From positions 35,774,001 through 35,838,000 of the forward strand of contig OZ281494.1 in NCBI GenBank assembly GCA_965637545.1: a stretch of 64,000 nt of DNA, given 5' to 3'. The notes beneath the pieces are model-generated. The model did not search any database, had not been told where the DNA came from, and saw nothing but the letters and a program-made list of their open reading frames with translations. The translations under genes were made by a program, and so were the position numbers. Shown one piece after another: positions 26,338 to 56,366 of the stretch; position 1 is the first letter of the stretch; every line of letters starts with the position of its first letter. This DNA is from Phallusia mammillata. Taxonomy: Eukaryota.

Positions 26338-28269
26338 GTCTATACGCATCATGTGTAAGTAAATCTAAGTCCAGCACCCGGTCACAAACTAATATGAAAT
26401 TCCCGGCGTGGTTTCAAACGTAGCCCAAGTCACCTAGCTAAACTAATCACAACATTTCAAGTGCTGTTTTAGATACTACATCTTGCAACGTTTTACATCT
26501 AGTTAGAAATCCATGTGGGATAAAACCCAGCGAATCTTAAACCTACTCCATGAACGTATTTTTTTATTACCCCATGTATGTTGTTTGATGTCTAGTGCCA
26601 ACATGCGGACAAAACTATCACTCCTACTGACTAATACAGGACGAATAACGTATCAATAAAATTAACATTCAGCCATGAAATAGAAATCAGCCTTACCTTG
26701 GGCGAGTGAAGTGGATTCGTCAGCGTTCCGCAAACCATGTAAACTAAATCAATATGTAGATGCCGCAGCAGTTGGTCTACACAATATATTCCATGTTGCA
26801 TCAACTTTCAAATTCCACTGCACTGCATTTAGCCACAGAGTAAACATTCCAACACATAACTAGACACAAACTGCTGTTGATTAATATTTGATGCAAACAA
26901 AATATTTATCACACACAAAAGTGATCAAACTTGTTCAAACTGCCACAATCCTATCTCTACATCACCAGCTGTTTTTTATTGCTTTCTTAACCCGTGCACA
27001 TAAAACCTTCCACTTGTTTTGCTGAAAAGCGAGATTTTCACAATTTCGACGCCGAACAATCAACGCGCTTCCACAAGCATTGTTACGTCACAAAAACGCC
27101 AGTTTATTTGCAAGACTTGAATTGAACCGAAGGCAGAGTTTATGTGTTGGTGAAAAACGCTCAAATACTTTGCACTGGTCGATGTGCGATGAATAAAACT
27201 GCAAACAATATGTGAATATATTTCAATTAAAAAAAAAACATAACAGAGACCATTCATGCCCCAACGAAAGATATATGCATTTTGAAACTGATTTAAAACA
27301 ACTTTTTTGTCTTGCTTCGGAAATGTAAAGCCAGTAAACATATGCGTCATCCTGCTCGACTTTTTTCTTTAGACTGATTGGATAACAGTGTTGCTATAAT
27401 AAATATCTTGGGCGATCTTAAACATGCGTTGTAACGCGTTACATAACATGTTGGTCACATGTTACCAACCTCCAAAGTGCCATTTTCATAAAATATCATC
27501 ACTATCACTGTGACAAAAAACCGCATTTTGTTTTACATTAAGTTAAAACAGAAAGTTGCACAGGATCCGGTTTCTTCAATAAAGTATTGTTAGCTTTCAA
27601 GGCGCAAAAATCACCGAACCTGGCCCGAAAAGCCCGGCCCGAGTAGAAACCTTAACTGATCTTATTTGTCACCAAACCAGCCAGTCCACCACGTTAAAGT
27701 TTCAAAACAAATGTGTTTGTAACAACTTTGTTATTTCTTACAGCAATAGACCACAGGAAACTGGCTAATTAAAGTGAAACAAGCTTATAAAGTTTTTGAA
27801 TCACTGCTTTGAATAATTAGGAAGGAAGTCTCTGGTATCAGATCAGATTGACTGGGTCGGGTGTGGTTTGTATGGAACGATCAACATTTCCATCTGAAAC
27901 ATACGAGAATCAATAAATCAAAGTTTCTGTCACCCAATAACCTTTGCTCGGGGTCAAATCGACACAAACCAGACCCTGTAGTGACGGATTAACAACATAA
28001 CTGCACAGTTGGTATTAAATCAATATGTTTAGGCATGCAACAGTTCTTTTAATATTTTGTAATTCATCATTTTTGTAACCAGATTTCACTCACAAACCAG
28101 AAATATACATAAAATTTTTGCTATACAACGCATTGCTTTTAGATGTTTACATTTTTTCAAAAAAATGGAACAAACAATAAAAATTTAAAATATACAATTC
28201 AATTGTTCTGCACTGTTACGTCACACGCACAAATAACTAATCATCAATAACAACAAACTATCAACAATT

Positions 28270-31200
28270 TCATGACGTCAGTGTTTCGTTTACAATCCGC
28301 AAATTGTTTTGGGTTCTGTCCATGAATCGCTTTCGCTCTTCCACGGTCATATCCTCAGATTTTCTGTAAACATTAATTGCTTCTCTGTAATATTTCACAG
28401 CGTCCTCATCACGTGATGTTTTCCCGCAAACGAACCCAAGGTTGTTCAACAAGTCACCGTAGACTCCATATTTGGCTGCATCATCTCCAAACTTGCGTTT
28501 CAACAAACTTATTCCTTCCCTAATAGTTTCTTCCCTCAGTTGATGGGAGCCGATCAAATTTAGACTGTATTCAATTTGATTCAAACACCTGGCCTCACAT
28601 TTACATCGAATTTTGTCGTCGACTTGTGGTAGAGTTTGAATCTGGTGACGCATGTCAGCGATCAAGGGGATCACGTGATCGCCCACAATCGGTTTGCTTG
28701 TGACGTCACTGATCATCATTGATTCGTTTGTTTCTTTCAATTCCCACGCACAATCCTTTACACCTCTCGCTGCGTCATCGGGACTTTGTTGCTTTGCATA
28801 GAAATCTGATGCAATATGGCAGAACAGGATCGACTCGGGATATTTATTCGCATTCCGAAGTTTTACGGCTAAAGTTGTCAAATCATTTGCTGTGGTTTTG
28901 ACTTGACCTTCAATTAACCTTGAAAGTTGTTGTTTTATTAAATGTGCTTCGTTGTATTTTCCCCGTTTCACAGAATCTGAGTATTTCTGGACCAACTGGG
29001 ATTTTTCGTTGCTTCCAGCTGAAAAAAGAAAAAAGCCTATAAATATACAAAGGTAGTTACAAATGCATTCTTTTACATGTTGGCTTTTCACGTCAATATA
29101 CGCCCTGCTGGGTACAAATATTTGCGTGACTAACAATTGTTGACAGATAGTTGTACTATGTAGCAGCAGAAAGGAGTACTAACCAATGGTGTCTAAAACG
29201 ATAAAGTCGGCTGACTATCGATGGCGGCTTATAATCCAGTGAATATGGCCAATTACAAAACAAGTGAAAACAGGAAGAAACAGAAACGAGGAAAACTTAC
29301 TTTTGGGTTGAAATATTTCATCGAGGTATGTGCTAGTGACGTCATCTAAAAAAATACATTTTTGTTTTTAGCTTTTTTTTCGGTGAATTACCTTTTGCGT
29401 TTTTCTTCTGATTATAAAAACAACGCACACATATAATTTATTAAGTTAGGTCAGTCAGTCACATTTAGTTAAACTACTTGACTTATTTGTCTTGTAAAGA
29501 ATTTCAGAACTGACAATATGACGTAACAATCCTTTTCACTCATGACGTAAGCAAGGTGGAACCGGAAACAGCACATTTACGCAATAGAAGGCCCAAAATT
29601 ATGGAATTCTATTCCTCAATATATCAAAGGCAACTCCCTCCACCTGTTCTGCAAATTATACAAACAAAAACTTTTGGATAACTATTTGACCCTGTGAGTT
29701 TGTTGCGTTTGTGCCATGCTTTTCATCCGCATTATTTTCGTGCAGTGAACATTTCGCTTGTATTCCTCTCGCCAGTTCCCTAGCAACCACGTGTTATATC
29801 TACTTACTTTAACAGGACCAATAGCGTACATCAATTATGTCATTGCAACCTGCGTACAATAACTAGTTTCCATTATCTAATTGCTCCAGTTGTGTGACTA
29901 TTATTTTTTCTTCTTTCCTGCCTACTTATATTTATTTCTGCATACGGATGGCTGATCTGATGACCGGTAAGGTCCCTTCGCCATCCGCCAGTTGCTTGAT
30001 TTTTGTATTTCATTGTATGCAATAACAGTATGCGCAACTGAAAATAAATATAATGAATGAATGAAGGAAATACCTCGTTGCTGTGGTGATGTGACGTCAT
30101 TCGCTGCTTCCATCTGTTGTGTTCGTGAACTTGGACCTCGTGGGGTGTCACGTGATGTGCTGGGAAGGTCGATGTTGCTTGCTGGTCTGCTCGATTCTGT
30201 CAATCAACAAACATCGGTTGAAAACACACTTGAATGGCGGAAGTGACGTAAATACATGACGTCATCGTGTTTAAACAGCGACAAAAGTCCAATAGTGGAA
30301 TATGTTTGTTATTTCCAAGTTTTGTGTCTCGTTATTCAACCAACATTCGATTTTACCTTCTGCTGTGTAAAATGTTTGGTCACGTGGTGAAAACTGGCGA
30401 ATCGGAACGAGTTGATTCTCAGCTGGTCTTTCAACTTTCAAATCCATTTGCCTCACAGAATTTGTCACTTGTTGCAGAATTGCTGCTGGGATTTGTGCGT
30501 CAACTAAACTCTGAAATTTGTCTCTAACTTCAGTTATATCTGGACGTTTTGTTGGATCGTGCTCCCAGCATCTTTTCATTTCTTCTTCCATCACTTTGGC
30601 TGCTAGTTTGTCGTCGTTGTTGTCGAGACTTGCTTTCAAATCATCAATCGCATCACAGTTTGGCCTCTTGCCGTTGATGATTGCATTTAACAAAGCAACT
30701 CCATCAGTTGGTGGATAAGGCTCTTCACAAGTAAGATACATATGGATTACCAAGCCAAACCCATACACGTCATGTCCCTTTCTCGGTTTCATTGTAATAT
30801 CTTCAAGTTTTTCTGGAGCGGTGTATAGAGCTGTGAATTGGATCTTTTCATCAGTGGCTGGAAGTCGAACAGTGGTTGATCCAGTTGTAGCAGCAAGCTT
30901 GGCCGAGCCAAAATCTGCCAATCTTGCGTGTAGATCTCTCGTCAGCAAGATGTTTTCAGGTTTCACGTCGCTATGAACCAATTTGTGACCAGGCAAGTTG
31001 TGAATGAAAGCTATTCCGTCCGCTGTTTCGACCAACTGACGAAGACGGAGTGGAATTCCTTTGGTGATTTCGTCATTGAGAAGGAAATCTCTGAGGTTAC
31101 CACCTTCATAATACTGCATGACAATTCCCATGCCACACGGCAGCGTCAACCAGCCATATGTCCTCACTACGTTTTCAGTTTGGGCGGATTGCAGCTTGCC

Positions 31201-32092
31201 TAGTTCTTTCATAACTCTGTTGAAATTAGAGTTAGACCGTTTGAGTCAGTCGTATACCAAAGACCAGACCGAGGGTAACGAACTAACGCGCAATCGCGCT
31301 ATTCTACAATCGACATGTGATGTCAGAAACGCCGAAAGTTATGTTAAATCGAGCCCAAATACCGGGGCTTTCAACTACATCTAAACAAGAGCAAAACGAG
31401 CCCAATTTGACTTTAATTACAACACGGTATGCAATGCTCATACATGAGAATAGATAAAAAGTGAGAATAGGTAAAAGTTTTTTGAAAGCATGCACTAAAA
31501 AGCGCAACCAGCAACACAAAGTCTAAAGCATTAATTTAAATATACATGTCACGACTGCATTAACTCGTCGTTGCAACCTGGTGCTGCAGTGCGGCCGCAG
31601 GTTGTGCACCCCTGTCTTAGACTATAGTATTTGGGAGGGAAAACCGCAACCCTGGCAACACTGTCCGCATTGTTTTGTCACACTGGCTTAATATGTTAGG
31701 AGAAAATAACATCACGTGATTGGTTCCACTCTGTTTTTGTTCGATCACAATCGTAAATTAAACTAGTGACGTAAAATGAATTAGCGTGGTGGTAAAAATG
31801 GACGCTTTTCCAAAACCAAAGTTGTATAGTTGAAAAACATACTTACGTATTTGTAAACAGTTTCTTAGCTTGCACTCCGCCATGGCATTCCATGACTTTA
31901 ACAGCAACTTTGTCGAGTTTTTTATGTTTTCCGACGAGAATCACTCCGAAACTTCCAGAACCCACAATACTTGACTTTGGGTCACACAGAATATCATCAG
32001 CATCAAATTCACCCAACTGAAAATTATCACAACATTTAACAAACTATAACTGAATTCCAAACTTTCTTACTTACATTAGATTGACTTGCCAT
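28270..32092 (-). CDS. RIPK-like (TKL) Ser/Thr kinase fused to a C-terminal helical/TPR domain, copy 1, about 654 aa, 6 exons
   Basis: Exons 32092-32075 (MASQSN), 32016-31847 (GSGSFG, VAVK), 31216-30357 (KE alphaC, HSDVKPEN, DFG, APE), 30196-30074 (S/P/T linker), 29345-29301 (45-nt micro-exon), 29018-28270 (helical; TPR-consensus LLNNLGFVCGKTSRDEDAVKYYREAINVY). All GT-AG with matching phases; total 1965 nt, open. Confidence 0.85.
29535..29700 (+). mobile_element. 3' end of a CR1/L2-group LINE in intron 4 of kinase-TPR copy 1
   Basis: Translates as AIEGPKLWNSIPQYIKGNSLHLFCKLYKQKLLDNYL, the G-P-K-L-W-N-x-x-P terminus of CR1/L2-group ORF2. Copy 2 keeps only the first part (about 42015-42090). 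Confidence 0.6.
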
Positions 32093-35000
32093 CTTTTTTT
32101 TTGTCACTTGAAGTTAAGGTTTTGAAAGCTTGCAAACTGTCAACCACTCCCTTATTTAGCAAAGTTTCAAAAGTTCCTCTCACAGCAGTGTGACGTTTCA
32201 TGAGGTTGGTTTCTCTTTTAAAGCCAATTGTGTCGTCACTTCCTGCCATCTTAAAGCTTAATGTTGAGACGACGTCAATTCCATTTCAAGTCAAGCGTTA
32301 CAAAACACCTTTTGTCAGCTCAATTATAACTCTTTTTTAATAGCCCATTCAAACGTCATTTATCAACTTAATTACATCGACTGTAATTATGGTGATGAGA
32401 ATGACGTCACATAAAGTGCAACAATTTAGTGCAGGTCCAGTAAGATCTAAAAAACATATCGTTCTGGAGTTCATATATTTTAAGATCGCTACAAATTCAC
32501 AACATCTCAAAATGTGAGTTTGTGTTGTTGATCCTTAACCTTTGGTGGAATGTTAACCAAACCATGCGCTCCATGTGGACATTTCAGGTAATACTGTTTT
32601 CCACTTCCACATTTTGAAATAAAGGTTTTGTTCAACCTGCCATGACAACTATTTATAGGATAAACAAGTTCCAGCTCTCAACACAACGAAACGTACAAAT
32701 CCATATGGAAAGCATGCGACCACCCCAAGCGCATGAGATAAGACGATGCTGCGTTACAACAACTAACGTGGTCACCCAACGTTTCCAAACAACAGACCGA
32801 GCATTAAACAACGTTTTCTTGTCACAAAGCAACAGGCAATGTCCCTATTGGATTTATGGGAACAAATGTAATGGAAAAATCGAGCCCATTATTCGCAGTA
32901 ACTATTATCTCCCACATTGTTGTATTAAATATACGTACAAAAATAAATCTTAAAGGTATAAAAAATCGTTTATTAAGGTAAGGTTTTAAAAGTTCGAAAA
33001 CTGTCAAGCACTCCCTTATTCAGGAAAGTTTTATCTAAGTTCAGCAGTGTGACGTTTCATGGGGTTTGTTCCGCTTAAGTAGCCAAGTATGACGTCGCTC
33101 AGTGATCTCGTACAAGTTGGTGGAGACGCCAGGTTCATTTTAAGCGTTACGAAAACACCTTGTGTCAGCCGAATTATAACTCTAGTAGCCATTGCGTGGA
33201 ATGAATTAAGGTTAAATATAACATGCCCCAAGTCTTTGTTGTTCGGGAACGTATTGTAGTATTCTGAAATCCCAATTTCGAACCCAAACAAACAAATTAA
33301 AACACTTGCTCTGTTTTATCGCATATCTCTTCGAAATTGTGTTTTTTGTTTGGTGTAAAGCCGTTGAATCGTGTTTTGCGTTCGTCGTTTCACTGGTTTA
33401 GAATATTTTTATTTTATTGTAAATAAATCCTGATAAGATTTCGATTCTTGTTTGGAACTGAATCGGTATAACGTTTTATTATATTGTCCAACCATAAACA
33501 CAGACTGATTCAAATGTACTGAAAGCCTCAGTATTGTATAACACTGAGTGTTAATAAGTTGCAAGGTTAAACCATTGAATGTTTAAAATTGTTTGACAAA
33601 ACATATAACCACTACCGACACCGCGTGGCTGACATGTGTTCCAGATTGGTCGTGTCTGATGGCCTCGTTGTTCCTTCTATCCTTGATACGATGTTTATTA
33701 TCAACATAGCGAATAAGCTGGCATCATACGTGGGCAGTATCTGATGTGATTACTCCACTGTCGAGCTGCAAAACACAATAATCGATGTTTTCATCAATTT
33801 TACAAGTTTCTGACGACTTCAATTCGCTACAACGATTTCGATTTGACCAGGTTGTTGATATGTCGTCACCACCGCCCCAAACCGCCCAATCGAATTCCGA
33901 GGTTGTCGAAGTAATTGAGCAACATAAACGCGGTGGCAAGACTCAGTCGATCACAGATCCAACATGAAATCCGATCCGGGCGATCGCGTGAAATTCGTTG
34001 ATCAACCAACAATCTATCTACTAAACGGGTATGGGAGCAAAATCGATGCGACCATTATTATGCAGAAGCTCATTTTACCCTGTTTCAAACGAACCTTCAG
34101 TAGTAACATAAAGTTTAAAACAATTCCAATTAATCACACCAAACTTCCACGATGAACTATTTCAACGACACCCATATATATTCTCGCAGTGTTAAAAGGT
34201 TTAGGGCAAGCATTTAGTTGGGCCACACATATTGTCTAACACGTCAGGACACCACAGTCACGTTGGCGCGTTCACACAAAGAAAGGGACTGTTTGTAATG
34301 TGTTTGTGATGCATATTAGCTTGAGTAAGGCTTCCTATATTTCAAAGTGACAATAATTCCAATGTGCCTTTTCATCTGTTAAACTCTTATTGCGCCGAAG
34401 CAACCGACAAAGTCAATCGGCATCTTATCACGGACAAAAAAGTCGGTGACAAAAGCGAAAGCCCAGTGAAACCGCCTCGCGAGTTTAACAACCCGACGAA
34501 ACGCCGCATGTACAAACCAAGTCTTCTATTTAACTTTACTGCGCGGTGTTCGCAATCGCCAGCTTGAGGCATCCCACGAGACCAGCCAACGCGATTCAAT
34601 GCAGCCAGCAGAGTGGTCGACATGCACGTGATATCCCATGTTCATCACGTGACAGTGATTCAGGATTCAACCGAACGGCGAGAGATGAAATCCATGCTGG
34701 CCAAGCTGGACAAACTGTGCAGCAAACAGCTTCCATGTTTCGTCGCGAACCCGGCCATGTCAGCCAAACTTCGCTGAAATACCTTGTCTATTAAGTACAG
34801 GGGAAGAAAAGCACCGTTCGGTGGTTCCCCAGTGACGTCGATTGAAATGTGTCAATCATTCTACTACAGTTTCACCCACTTTGAATAGGAGGTTTGTTTA
34901 AAAGATTTTTTCTCTGTGCGCTGTGAAGTAGAAACGTGGTGTTGATGAGACGTGGTAGGTTACAATGGAACATTTTGTGTCAGTATTAGGTTGTTTTAGT

Positions 35001-40292: not shown

Positions 40293-40587
40293 TTTTTCTT
40301 GTAAGTGAAAAAAAAAAACGTTTCAACACTGAATTGCTGATCAATAAAATCCTTGGTTTAAACCTGTAACGTTTTTTTTCAAATTAAGTTAAGTTTAGTG
40401 CTGAGATTTCATCTCAATATAAAAATAAACATTTATAGCTTTGCTTTATAAAACAAAGTGAATCAAAATCGGAAAATACCAATGTACATTCAATTGTTTA
40501 TCACTGTTACGTCATACATATTACAAAACAAATCATTATTCACAACAAATAAATACAATAGGGTGACGTCATAATGACCCTTTTGGT

Positions 40588-43500
40588 TTATTTTTTTTGC
40601 ACAATCCGCAAGTTCTTTTGACTATTGTCCATGTGTCGCTTTTGCTGTTGCTTGGTCAAATCCTTAGATTTTCTGTAAGCTTTAATTGCTTCTGTGTAAT
40701 ATTTCACGGCCTCCTTATCACGTGATGTTTTCCCGCAAACGAACCCAAGGTTGTTCAACAAGAGACCGTAGACTCCGTATTTGGCTGCATCATCTCCAAA
40801 CTTGCGTTTCAACAAACTTATTCCTTCCCTGATAGGTTCTTCCTTCAGTTGATGGGAGCCGACCAAACCTAGACTGTATTCAATGTAATGCAAACATCTG
40901 ACCTCACATACACATCGAATTTTGTCGTCGACTTGTGGTAGAGTTTGAATCTGGTGACGCATGTCAGCGATCAAGGTGGTCACGTGATCGACCACAATTG
41001 ATTTGTTTGTGTCGTCACTGTTCATCATTGATTCGTTTGTTTCTACCAATTGCCACGCACAATCCTTTACACCTCTCGCTGCGTCATCGGGACTTTGTTG
41101 CTTTGCATAGAAATCTGATGCAATATGGCAGAACAGGATCGACTCGGGATATTTCTTTGCATTTCGAAATTTTGCAGCAAAATTTTTCAATTCATTTGCA
41201 GTGGTTTTGACTTGACCTTCAATTAACCTCGAAAGTTGCTGTTTTATTAAATTTGCTTCGTTATATTTTCGCCGTTTCACAGAATCTGAGTATTTTTGAA
41301 CCAACTGGAATTTTTCGTTGCTTCCAACTGAAAAACAAAAAGGCACATTATCATTTTTTGACAGTTTTAAACGCACATTAAGCTATATGCTGTTAAAAGT
41401 CCACCAAAAAGTTTACATCAAACTGATGGGAAGGATATTTATATATTTATTTTTATATATTGTGAGTTACTCATTTTCAACACACACTGATAGTTTATTT
41501 TTGGAGGCATGGTTTTCCCATAAACGATGAAAATTGTGACACATCAGTACGAAAACTTGAAAAATATATAGTGCTAAATTATGACAAGTTTTTTCCCACA
41601 TTATTGCCAAAATTTCAAACAATTTCGTTAAAATTTCTCCAGAAAAAAATTATTTTGACAAGAATCAAAGCACAGCTGTCCCACGACAACAAAAGACACT
41701 GAACATGTATATTGTAAATAATTGATGTAAAAAAAGAGTGCTTCAGTGGAAATTACTAAACAAGTGGAAGACAGGAAAAAACAGAAACGAGGAAAACTTA
41801 CTTTTGGGTTGAAATATTTCATCGAGGGCTTTGCTGGTGATGTCACCTAAAAACATGAACAAGTTTGTTTTTTGATACTGTTTATGAAAACCAATTAACG
41901 ACAAATTAAACTGCTTAAAACAACGCACACATAAAATTGATTAGGTAGGGCCAGCCAGTCACGTTTAGTTAAAACTAAACGACTTCTTTCGGGTGTAGCG
42001 AACTTCAGAACTGACAATATGACGTAACAATCTACTAACTTAAGACGTAAGCCAAGCGGCACCGGAAACAGCATTATTATACGCAATAGAAAGAAATACC
42101 TTGTTGTTGTGGTGATGTGACGTCATGCGCTGCTTCTATCTGTTGTGTTTGTAAACTTTGACCTCGTGAGGTGTCACGTGATGTGCTGGGAAGGTCGATG
42201 TTGTTTGCTGGTTTGCTCGATTCTGTCAATCAAAAAACATTGGTTGAAAACTCACTTGAATGGCGGAAGTGACATAAATACACGACTTTATCATGTATGA
42301 ACAGCGACAAAACGTTTATAAGCTAGAAAAATGTTTGTTATTTGCAAGTTTTGTGTCTCGTTATTCAACCAACATTCGATCATACTTTGTGGTGTGTGAA
42401 ATGTTTGGTCACGTGGTGAAAACCGGCGAAGCGGAACGAGTTGATTCTCAGCTGGGCTTTCAACTTTCATATCCATTTGCCTCACAGAATTTGTCACTTG
42501 TTCCAGAATCGCTGCTGGGTTTTGTGCGTCAACTAAACTCTGAAATTTGTCTCTAACTTCAGTTATATCTGGACGTTTTGTTGGATCGTGCTCCCAGCAT
42601 CTTTTCATTTCCTCTTCCATCACTTTGGCTACTACTTTGTCCTTGTTGTTGTCGAGACTTGCTTTCAAATCATCAATCGCATCACAGTCTGGTCGCTCTC
42701 CGTTGATGATGGCATTCGTCAAGGTATTTATTTCTGTTGGTGGATAAGGCTCTTCACAAGTAAGAGACATATGGATTACCAAGCCAAATCCATAGACGTC
42801 GTGCTCTTTTTTAGGCGGCATTGTCACTTTTTTAAGTTTTTCAGGAGCGGTGTATAGAGCTGTGAATTGGATCTTTTCTCCAGTGGCTGGAAGGCGAACA
42901 GTGGTTGATCCAGTTGTAGCAGCAAGCTTTGCCGAGCCAAAATCTGCCAGTCTTGCGTGTAGATCTCTCGTCAGCAAGATGTTTTCAGGCTTCACGTCGT
43001 TATGAACCAATTTGTGACCAGGCAAGTTGTGAATGAAAGCTATTCCGTCTGCTGTTTCGACCAACTGACGAACACGGAGTGGAATTCCTTTGGTGATTTC
43101 GTCATTGAGAAGAAAATCTCTGAGGTTCCCACCTTCATAATACTGCATGACAATTCCCATGCCACACGGCAGGGTCAACCAGCCATATGTCCTCATTACG
43201 TTTTCAGTTTGGGCGAATTGCAGCTTGCCAAGTTCTTTCATGACTCTGTTGAAATTAGTTAATTCAAAGTCAGCCGCTCACCAAAGATCAGACCGAGGGT
43301 AACGAATAACAATGCGCCATTCTACAATCGACATGTGATGCCAGAAACGCCTAAAGTTATGTCAAAGCGAGCCCAAAAGCCGGGGCTTGAAAAATTTTTT
43401 AAAAAGCAGCAAAACGAAACCCAATTAGACTAAAATTACAACACGGTATACAATGCTCATGCATGGGTAAAAAGTGTTTTATGTAAGCCCGCACTCAAAA

Positions 43501-44654
43501 AGCGTAACCAGCAACTCAAAGTCTAAATCAGGGGTGTGCAACCTTTTTCGTCGGTGGGCCATATAATCAATTTCGTACATCAAGCGAGGGCCACACAATT
43601 TTTTTCATGTACCGTATTTACACGTTTTTTTACCCTTCTGTTGGTGCGGCTTGCATTATAATATCATGTCGATATTATTTCCACCCCCTGCGTTTTGTTT
43701 TATTTTGCGTTTAAAATCAACTACAACACTCGCAACCCAGCACCCATTGCGAATAGAAGACCATAGGTCTGGGTGAATTAACTTCCATGCGCTGGTTTAG
43801 CTTATTCTTGTTACGTATAGCAACTTAGGAAATTCCGAAACCTAGCGCGGATTTTTTGTCAAAAGTGCATTTTTACTTGTTCTAAATCAGAGTGTTGTTG
43901 AGGGCCACACTAAACGGCTTAGCGGGCCGGATTGTGGCCCGCAGGCCGCGGGTCGCACACCCCTGGTCTAAAGCATTTGTGCGAGAAAACCGCAACCCTG
44001 GCAACACGTGATGTTAAAGCGTGGTGTTAAAAATGTACAAATGATTTTGCAAACAAAGTTGTAAGCAAACTTACGTATTTTTGAAAAGTTTCTTAGTTTG
44101 CACTCCGCCATGGCATTCCATGACTTTAACAGCAACTTTGTCGAGTTTTCTATGTTTTCCGACGAGAACCACTCCGTAACTTCCAGAACCCACAATACTT
44201 GACTTTGGGTCACACAGAATATCATCAGCATCAAATTCACGCAACTGTAAAAATGAATGAATTTACAAACAGGCCTGTTGCAAAAATTTGGTCAAGCAAA
44301 GCGGGAATATAAGTAACGAGACAAAAACCTTAATCTTTTTTTTGGCGTTTTGCAAAAAGCAATGACATGTTTGGCTGCACAAAGCTCGCCAAACCAGCTT
44401 AAAACGTGCAAAGTCAATGAATTTACAAAGTGGCCTGCTGCAATACATAAGCAAAGCGGGTTTCATAACGATCCAACAACGTTAATATGTTTCAGAAGTT
44501 TTACAAAATCAATTGCTATGGTGGGCTGCACAAAGCTCGCCTACAAACCCGCTTAAAACGTGCAAAGTCACGCATGCAAACATAATTATGCAGAATCAGA
44601 TTGTGTTTGGTCCAAAATACTTACATTAGGTTGACTTGGTTGAGCGCTTTCCAT
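40588..44654 (-). CDS. RIPK-like kinase-TPR gene, copy 2, about 655 aa, 6 exons
   Basis: Exons 44654-44625 (MESAQPSQPN), 44244-44075 (GSGSYG, VAVK), 43245-42386 (HNDVKPEN, DFG, APE), 42222-42100, 41846-41802, 41327-40588. Exons 2-5 have the same lengths and phases as copy 1; total 1968 nt, open. Confidence 0.85.
43529..43965. mobile_element. hAT MITE, 437 bp, in intron 2 of kinase-TPR copy 2
   Basis: TIR CAGGGGTGTGC(A/G)ACC. TSD GTCTAAAT/GTCTAAAG (7/8). Copy 1 has a single GTCTAAAG at the equivalent site (31521-31528). Confidence 0.85.

Positions 44655-46994: not shown

Positions 46995-56366
<9,372 letters not shown>

Follow-up and report, generated by a model that had tools for sequence, protein, structure and literature searches.

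Probable relaxed constraint and changes at diversifying positions in the TPR-like exon of a tandem pair of RIPK-like kinase gene models from the sea squirt Phallusia mammillata

In plant BSK kinases a TPR tail follows the kinase, and the IFIT proteins of vertebrates are TPR-like immune effectors with positively selected sites and adaptive changes in their binding groove. Kinesin light chain (KLC) and LGN/Pins contain long-helix TPRs that bind peptides in a concave groove, and RIPK4 has a kinase followed by C-terminal ankyrin repeats, which we take to be the same kinase and helical-repeat layout as in the two genes considered here. These genes, A and B, are tandem paralogues on the minus strand of a 64,000-nucleotide stretch of Phallusia mammillata DNA (GenBank assembly GCA_965637545.1, contig OZ281494.1, positions 35,774,001 to 35,838,000 of the forward strand; hereafter the window), which is AT-rich, of animal type and intron-bearing, and each is modelled as a kinase followed by short linker exons and a TPR-like domain in its last exon. 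The BSK and IFIT proteins are comparable to A and B in these respects only, and their lineages, ligands and domain numbers differ. The nearest described phenomenon is found in fungal NOD-like receptors (NLRs), whose TPR, ANK and WD repeats have hypervariable, positively selected concave positions (PMC4986451). For the Phallusia pair, we estimate a probability of about 0.6 that most of the excess divergence in the TPR-like exon reflects relaxed constraint, with about eight of the changes lying at positions where the family is diversifying.

The TPR-like exon diverges more between A and B than the kinase does, as a first, sequence-only reading of the window had noticed. BLASTP aligns 199 identical residues of 242 (82%) in the TPR-like exon and 276 of 314 (88%; 90% by tblastn) in the kinase exon, and codon alignment returns the 46 differing residues in 245 codons that had been counted by hand, three of which fall in the last three aligned codons and are doubtful, an 18-nucleotide indel adjoining the stop. 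At the DNA level the two exons are nearly equally conserved (90.5% identity in the TPR-like exon and 89.6% in the kinase exon), so the lower protein identity of the former reflects a higher ratio of replacement to silent changes (56:17 versus 37:28; Fisher p = 0.018). The kinase exon is constrained (NG86 dN 0.058, dS 0.163 and omega, or dN/dS, 0.36; maximum likelihood (ML) omega after Goldman-Yang 0.37; likelihood ratio test (LRT) against 1, p = 0.0005), while the corresponding values for the TPR-like exon are dN 0.103, dS 0.122 and omega 0.84 (bootstrap 0.47-1.64), with an ML omega of 1.0 (p = 0.9). Diversifying selection, which the same reading had proposed for a ligand-binding groove, was not borne out over the whole exon, dN/dS (0.84-1.0) not being above the neutral expectation and the differences being scattered over inner and outer helices alike. 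No segment had an omega significantly above 1 in sliding windows or per-helix tests; for example, omega was 4.5 in the helix to which attention had been drawn (p = 0.11, post hoc), 1.6 in the last helix (p = 0.5) and 3.4 in codons 91-118 (p = 0.19).

Codon site models with more paralogues, which had been suggested as a check, were run on 13 intact copies from eight loci of Ciona intestinalis (L001-L008, assembly GCA_018327825.2), where the domain is also a single exon and where, by eye, the alignment shows near-identical sequences interrupted by isolated hypervariable columns. The models were fitted with our own code on an iqtree2 tree in which only the overall scale of the branch lengths was free, and the M0 likelihood obtained in this way equals that of iqtree2 exactly (-4012.41). 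Under M0, omega is 1.43 (LRT against 1 = 10.6, p = 0.001), and M2a is favoured over M1a with an LRT of 277, assigning 44% of sites to omega 0.13, 45% to omega 1 and 10% to omega 8.8. Because recombination between tandem copies can inflate site tests, the comparison was repeated with segment-wise trees for three segments, giving LRTs of 11.5, 108 and 91. The Ciona domain family is under very strong diversifying selection at about 20 sites (19 with posterior >0.9, 22 with posterior >0.5), which in window numbering are 33, 87, 91, (94), 143, 147, 150, (153), 158, 161, 163, 165, 184, 188, 195, 198, 203, (211), 217, 231, 234 and 241.

When these 22 sites are transferred to the Phallusia pair, A and B differ at 8 of them versus 33 of the 209 other mapped sites (p = 0.023), and six of the nine mapped codons that were hit twice lie within the set (94, 147, 153, 188, 231 and 234; hypergeometric p = 2.6e-5). 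When the whole exon shares one silent rate, the 22 sites have an omega of 3.3 and the rest one of 0.70 (LRT for equality 16.8), and an omega of 1 at the 22 sites is rejected (LRT 8.5, p = 0.0035, with the exon dS as yardstick). Counting the same sites gives proportions of replacement (pN) and silent (pS) differences of 0.257 and 0.118 (p = 0.016). The proposal of diversifying selection on a groove divides into two parts, failing for the exon as a whole and finding partial support at the sites selected in Ciona (omega about 3.3, p = 0.0035 against the exon dS).

Several points weigh against this second part. No test on the two Phallusia sequences alone reaches omega >1, and the site set comes from another species at about 37% identity and was mapped by alignment. 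The result for the subset hinges on the exon silent rate as neutral yardstick; measured against the divergence of the alignable intron (0.187), the excess in pN of 0.257 is not significant (p = 0.13), although at least six double hits in 22 codons still have p = 0.03 at the intron rate. Restricting the set to the 19 sites with posterior >0.9 lowers pN to 0.189, which does not significantly exceed pS (p = 0.16), although it still exceeds the value at the other sites (permutation p = 0.019). The double hits could also have come from multinucleotide mutation or short gene-conversion tracts. In addition, 'concave' is defined by TPR numbering for one repeat and by helix periodicity for the others, and one presumed RNA run gave nothing on this stretch for either gene.

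The assignment of faces depends on the fold of the domain. Single-sequence Pfam TPR matches cover residues 188-219 and lie under the gathering cut-off (21 bits versus 27.8), and a word-index protein search with the exon returned nothing in its length band. An exhaustive representative protein search found 747 relatives, the nearest of which come from Ciona intestinalis and Phallusia mammillata; no closer relative from the same species was found in the protein collections, where the best match is 47% identical. From an alignment of 55 relatives with A and B (57 rows), AlphaFold2 predicts an all-helical domain (pLDDT 97.8, pTM 0.93) of about 245 amino acids in a single exon, with 11 helices arranged as five helix pairs and a cap helix, and the best Foldseek matches of this model are the TPR domains of LGN/Pins and KLC (probability 1.0, TM about 0.6). 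A canonical TPR motif, and only one repeat of it, is present at residues 187-220, where L190, L193, G194, C197, A206, Y210 and A213 are in register with consensus TPR positions 4, 7, 8, 11, 20, 24 and 27, and over residues 191-216 the family profile follows the register of consensus TPR proteins; its match to an engineered TPR protein has E = 2.4e-55 when repeated matches are added up. TPR positions are given here as residue number minus 186, following this last full repeat, and the register of residues 191-216 makes helices 1, 3, 5, 7, 9 and 11 inner (A-type) and helices 2, 4, 6, 8 and 10 outer (B-type). With its 34-residue motif and stacked helix pairs, the modelled domain is assigned to the TPR superfamily. 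It shares with the TPRs of KLC and LGN/Pins a predicted right-handed all-helical array of helix pairs with a cap helix, and the family profile matches the KLC1/2 TPRs over residues 142-220, but identity to the TPRs of KLC and LGN is 14-17% and the first 140 residues of the last exon match no TPR profile by sequence.

In TPR proteins, positions 2, 5, 9, 12, 13, 33 and 34 are variable and lie on the concave face, and the ligand contacts of Hop involve positions 2, 5, 6, 9, 12 and 13 (Magliery and Regan, PMC1261162). Selected sites 188, 195 and 198 correspond to positions 2, 9 and 12 on the concave face, and sites 143, 147, 150 and 153 in helix 7, like 87, 91 and 94 in helix 5, follow an i, i+4, i+7 stripe on inner helices; if helix 7 is registered by its apolar positions, its sites would be TPR positions 2, 6, 9 and 12.

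The pattern on one helix that first suggested selection is present exactly as described, with nine replacement changes and one silent change at helix positions i, i+3, i+7, i+8, i+14 and i+16. These changes (K139V, A142V, a silent change at R143, N146H, Q147Y, N153G and I155V) lie in a segment that covers most of inner helix 7 (codons 134-154), the only helix for which nominally significant helical-wheel clustering was found (R = 0.70, p = 0.045, uncorrected, six helices tested); those in helices 3, 5, 6 and 11 are scattered (R = 0.23 for helix 11). Two of the six replaced residues in helix 7 (147 and 153) are family selected sites, while the remaining four fall on a stripe some 80 degrees from these, which is semi-conserved in the family (L139, A/V142, H146) and on which A, not B, departs from the consensus. 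The C-terminal exchange of EDMTVEERKRF for KDLTKQQQKRH is likewise real, and in the last helices only F231H and R234N fall on family selected sites, whereas the acidic-to-basic swaps at 221-228 do not. Across the exon, clustering on one face did not hold up, since differences occur at 16 of 91 inner and 14 of 97 outer residues (without the cap helix) and most helices are scattered. By helix, from 1 to 11, there are 1, 1, 6, 0, 3, 6, 5, 2, 1, 5 and 11 differences, with 5 in loops and none in the 34-codon block of codons 58-91. Outside the selected sites, 33 mapped differences remain; of the 16 in helices that have a selected-site face, 4 lie on that face against 3.9 expected.

Differences that are scattered and that also hit family-conserved residues point to relaxed constraint. 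Copy B has lost such residues at I116T and P117T (the VIP motif), T164P (inside helix 8), R228Q and L53, and A has lost H146; when sites are divided into thirds by family conservation, omega is about 1 in each of them (conserved, middle and variable), and it is near 1 throughout when they are partitioned by hydropathy. Family entropy does not separate the A/B-variable from the invariant sites (p = 0.36), which is attributed to the family being too divergent. It could be proposed that relaxation is the whole explanation, all differences in the exon, including those at hypervariable sites, being neutral drift after duplication without positive selection on the pair. An exon-wide omega inseparable from 1, its value of about 1 in every class of conservation, the lack of face preference on most helices, the near-equal rates at Ciona-constrained and neutral sites (14.8% versus 17% differing) and a pN at the selected sites that is not above the intron divergence would all fit such drift. 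It does not account for the concentration of double-hit codons in a set of sites defined beforehand, which persists at the intron rate, or for the difference in omega between these sites and the rest; moreover, the frequency of change at apolar core positions is half that at the other positions (7/74 versus 36/168), and the frame is free of stops and indels. Drift alone is on balance an unlikely account, if one to be taken seriously, and relaxation of most of the exon combined with selected change at a few positions is preferred.

The reading frame of the exon is clearly maintained. The alignable intron has diverged by 18.7% with one indel per 11 substitutions, a ratio at which the exon should have gained about six indels, yet 242 of its codons contain none (P = 0.0024); random substitution at the observed density leaves the frame free of stops in 4.5% of simulations. 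These figures also bear on whether copy B (40588-44244) has lost its function or is decaying, so that its decay produced the excess divergence. The replacement of family-conserved I116, P117, R228 and L53, the proline in the middle of helix 8 (T164P) and the lack of an ATG where A has its putative start would be in keeping with decay. However, all exons of B that can be aligned to A keep open frames and splice sites, and the drift of one copy alone without a stop or an indel would be unlikely (roughly 0.2 x 0.05). Changes that can be polarised with the family are nearly even, with 14 sites at which A is the nearer to the family and 12 at which B is, and on the semi-conserved stripe of helix 7 it is B that holds the consensus. 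Decay of B is accordingly judged improbable, and the preferred reading remains one of relaxed constraint on two maintained copies with selected change at a few sites.

A further source of clustered differences would be gene conversion, in which patches from other family members made the identical blocks and the clusters of differences as a mosaic without selection on amino acids. Possible donors appear to be numerous: summing contig depths from three DNA runs over 28200-32100 gives values in the exons of gene A that are 5-15 times those in its introns, which is not a copy number, and only the last approximately 190 bases of the TPR-like exon (28270-28461) do not rise clearly above the introns. 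The depths suggest that the genome has many near-identical copies in other places, with a C-terminal part that is more specific to this copy. Among the variants listed from the DNA runs, several from other individuals or copies have the residue of B in the context of A, for example R211T at a family selected site, and codons 58-91 lack any difference. In contrast, the differences at selected sites are isolated single codons and not tracts, and conversion leaves the replacement excess confined to predefined sites unexplained, which makes a mosaic of this kind very improbable as an alternative to relaxed constraint with selected change at the family's diversifying positions. The unchanged 34-codon block was considered as a conversion tract and set aside, about 2.5 silent differences being expected there with an estimated P(0) of about 0.08, which is not significant. 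A McDonald-Kreitman-type count of the same variants gave replacement:silent ratios of 4:1 in the TPR-like exon and 11:8 in the kinase exon, numbers that are too small to interpret and whose variants possibly stem from other copies.

The kinase part matches the Pfam protein kinase family with E about 1e-27 and has the motifs GSGSFG, VAVK, HSD/HND..N, DFG and APE, its catalytic loop being of the non-RD type (A has HSD and B has HND). Among solved structures RIPK1 matches it best (E = 3e-25) and RIPK4 comes next, and from this similarity it is described as RIPK-like only. Likeness to RIPK1 and RIPK4 lies in the kinase, A and B having the non-RD loop, while the tail of A and B differs in being TPR-like. 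A Pfam scan of the two large exons per gene found the kinase and weak TPR matches only, with no death domain and no ankyrin repeats (RHIM and CARD were not searched for), and the small linker exons are too short for a domain. No NACHT or NB-ARC NTPase was found in the exons of either gene model, and the genes are therefore not NLRs.

The exon structures of A and B (Table 1) are models predicted from the DNA, with AG/GT at all junctions and consistent phases in both copies. The start of the last exon of A, given as 29018 in the sequence-only reading, coincides exactly with the splice acceptor boundary, and codon 1 (G) begins at 29016. In gene B, linker exons sit between the matching exons as in A. 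Similarity between the copies stops just upstream of the glycine-loop exon, and B lacks an ATG at the place of the putative start of A (44253-44350 versus 32024-32120), with GATGGCAAG in A and GATTAAGG in B. The 3' flanks (28000-28270 versus 40310-40588) have diverged, yet short blocks are conserved, namely TGACGTCA followed by TGACGTAACAGTG..AACAATTGAA.

Table 1 Predicted exons of genes A and B and positions in the TPR-like domain, in window coordinates
Feature	Position	Strand	Basis or remark
Gene A, putative first coding exon	32075..32092	-	ATG..AAT, then GTAAGT; from sequence only
Gene A, exon with glycine loop and VAVK lysine	31847..32016	-	Translation and splice sites; 93% identity to copy B
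Gene A, kinase exon (C-lobe and most of N-lobe)	30357..31216	-	Pfam Pkinase / PK_Tyr_Ser-Thr
Gene A, linker exon, 123 nucleotides	30074..30196	-	Predicted; splice sites and phase consistent, conserved in B
Gene A, linker mini-exon, 45 nucleotides	29301..29345	-	Predicted; AG and GTAAGT, frame fits both neighbours, conserved in B
Gene A, last exon, TPR-like helical domain, 248 amino acids and stop	28270..29018	-	Intact open reading frame, AG acceptor 29019-29020
Segment of codons 136-156, most of helix 7	28549..28611	-	Six A/B residue differences
Codon 188, D in A and L in B, two nucleotide changes	28453..28455	-	TPR position 2, concave; Ciona posterior 1.0
Helix 11, C-terminal cap helix, codons 225-247	28276..28344	-	Eight A/B differences to codon 242 and three doubtful ones at 243-245
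Gene B, glycine-loop exon	44075..44244	-	Matches gene A 31847..32016
Gene B, kinase exon	42386..43245	-	Paralogue of 30357..31216
Gene B, last exon, TPR-like	40588..41327	-	Frame intact; paralogue of 28270-29018

The block TGACGTCA is a CRE-like octamer palindrome that occurs 22 times in the window versus 0.95 expected from shuffles (maximum 3), for example at 28273, 28701, 29337, 30092, 30257, 40564, 42118, 48261-48442 and 49629-49735. Gene A contains five of the sites, among them ones in coding exons and one directly at the stop codon, and some have been conserved in gene B. An open frame of 857 amino acids on the minus strand (46995-49568), a short way upstream of gene B, encodes a serine/proline-rich low-complexity protein and lies in the GC-richest part of the window (about 47-48% GC). 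A further minus-strand exon at 55262-55723 encodes the N-lobe of another protein kinase, which is not a copy of the A/B family.

In Ciona, the loci also hold several truncated copies (first 83-150 residues only), and many annotated products consist of the domain alone (230-300 amino acids) without a kinase. At one locus (L007) a neighbouring gene encodes an SH3 domain and a kinase, and one Ciona protein (P0001) carries four tandem domains. Distant relatives of the domain, at about 30% identity, were seen on three metagenome contigs (L009-L011; ENA, JGI; 19-43 kb with sparse gene calls), which are probably DNA of unidentified environmental eukaryotes, and the range of the family may extend beyond the named sea squirts. 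We found no paper on this domain family.

The course of divergence that best fits these observations would begin with a recent tandem duplication that gave rise to A and B (silent divergence about 0.12-0.16) within a large sea-squirt family that evolves fast and combines a RIPK1-like non-RD kinase, short linker exons and a single-exon TPR-like domain. The excess divergence of that domain would have two sources. The first would be a few specificity positions on inner helices, strongly diversifying family-wide as the Ciona copies demonstrate, about eight of which would have changed in the pair above the silent rate, six of them by two nucleotide changes per codon. The second would be about 35 further replacements on both helix types and on all faces, family-conserved positions included, which may reflect constraint that is weak or was relaxed after duplication (omega about 0.7) in a frame kept open by selection, any extra relaxation being more visible in B. 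A and B would sample a state common to the family, with a few hypervariable inner-helix positions set on a scaffold whose large surface is loosely constrained. By analogy with other TPR domains, the most likely function of this domain is to hold a peptide or protein as ligand in the concave groove; such binding would recruit or regulate the attached kinase, and different copies would recognise different partners. What the analysis shows is the gene structure as read from sequence, the predicted fold, the rates and the pattern of sites, and it is by inference that ligand binding, a link from it to the kinase and a part in immunity are put forward.

Compared with the repeats of fungal NLRs, the family shows the same combination of highly similar copies with few hypervariable inner-helix positions at omega >1, as seen in the Ciona copies. 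It differs in that the variation lies between paralogous genes and not among the repeats of one array, and the NACHT or NB-ARC partner of the fungal proteins is replaced by a kinase, or by no partner in many Ciona copies, in an animal lineage. The likeness to immune receptors is one of analogy only. The pair also carries a caution, as neither the lower identity of a single exon nor changes along one face of a helix show positive selection, and the real signal emerged only with independent paralogues.

Among invertebrates, tunicates are most closely related to vertebrates, and to our knowledge they have no antibody-type adaptive immunity. In Ciona, an uncharacterised and much-expanded sea-squirt domain family bears the classical signature of a diversified groove at canonical TPR ligand positions, and in the Phallusia genome this domain is fused to a RIPK-like kinase, a type of kinase involved in cell death and inflammation. 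As a tentative possibility, sea squirts may encode in their germline a large repertoire of intracellular receptor kinases, whose recognition module would be a TPR-like groove that is hypervariable at about 20 positions and directly wired to a RIPK-like kinase, serving innate immunity or self/non-self recognition, with A and B as two recently split specificities. Diversified, receptor-like families of this kind would be candidates for the recognition of pathogens or non-self in tunicates.

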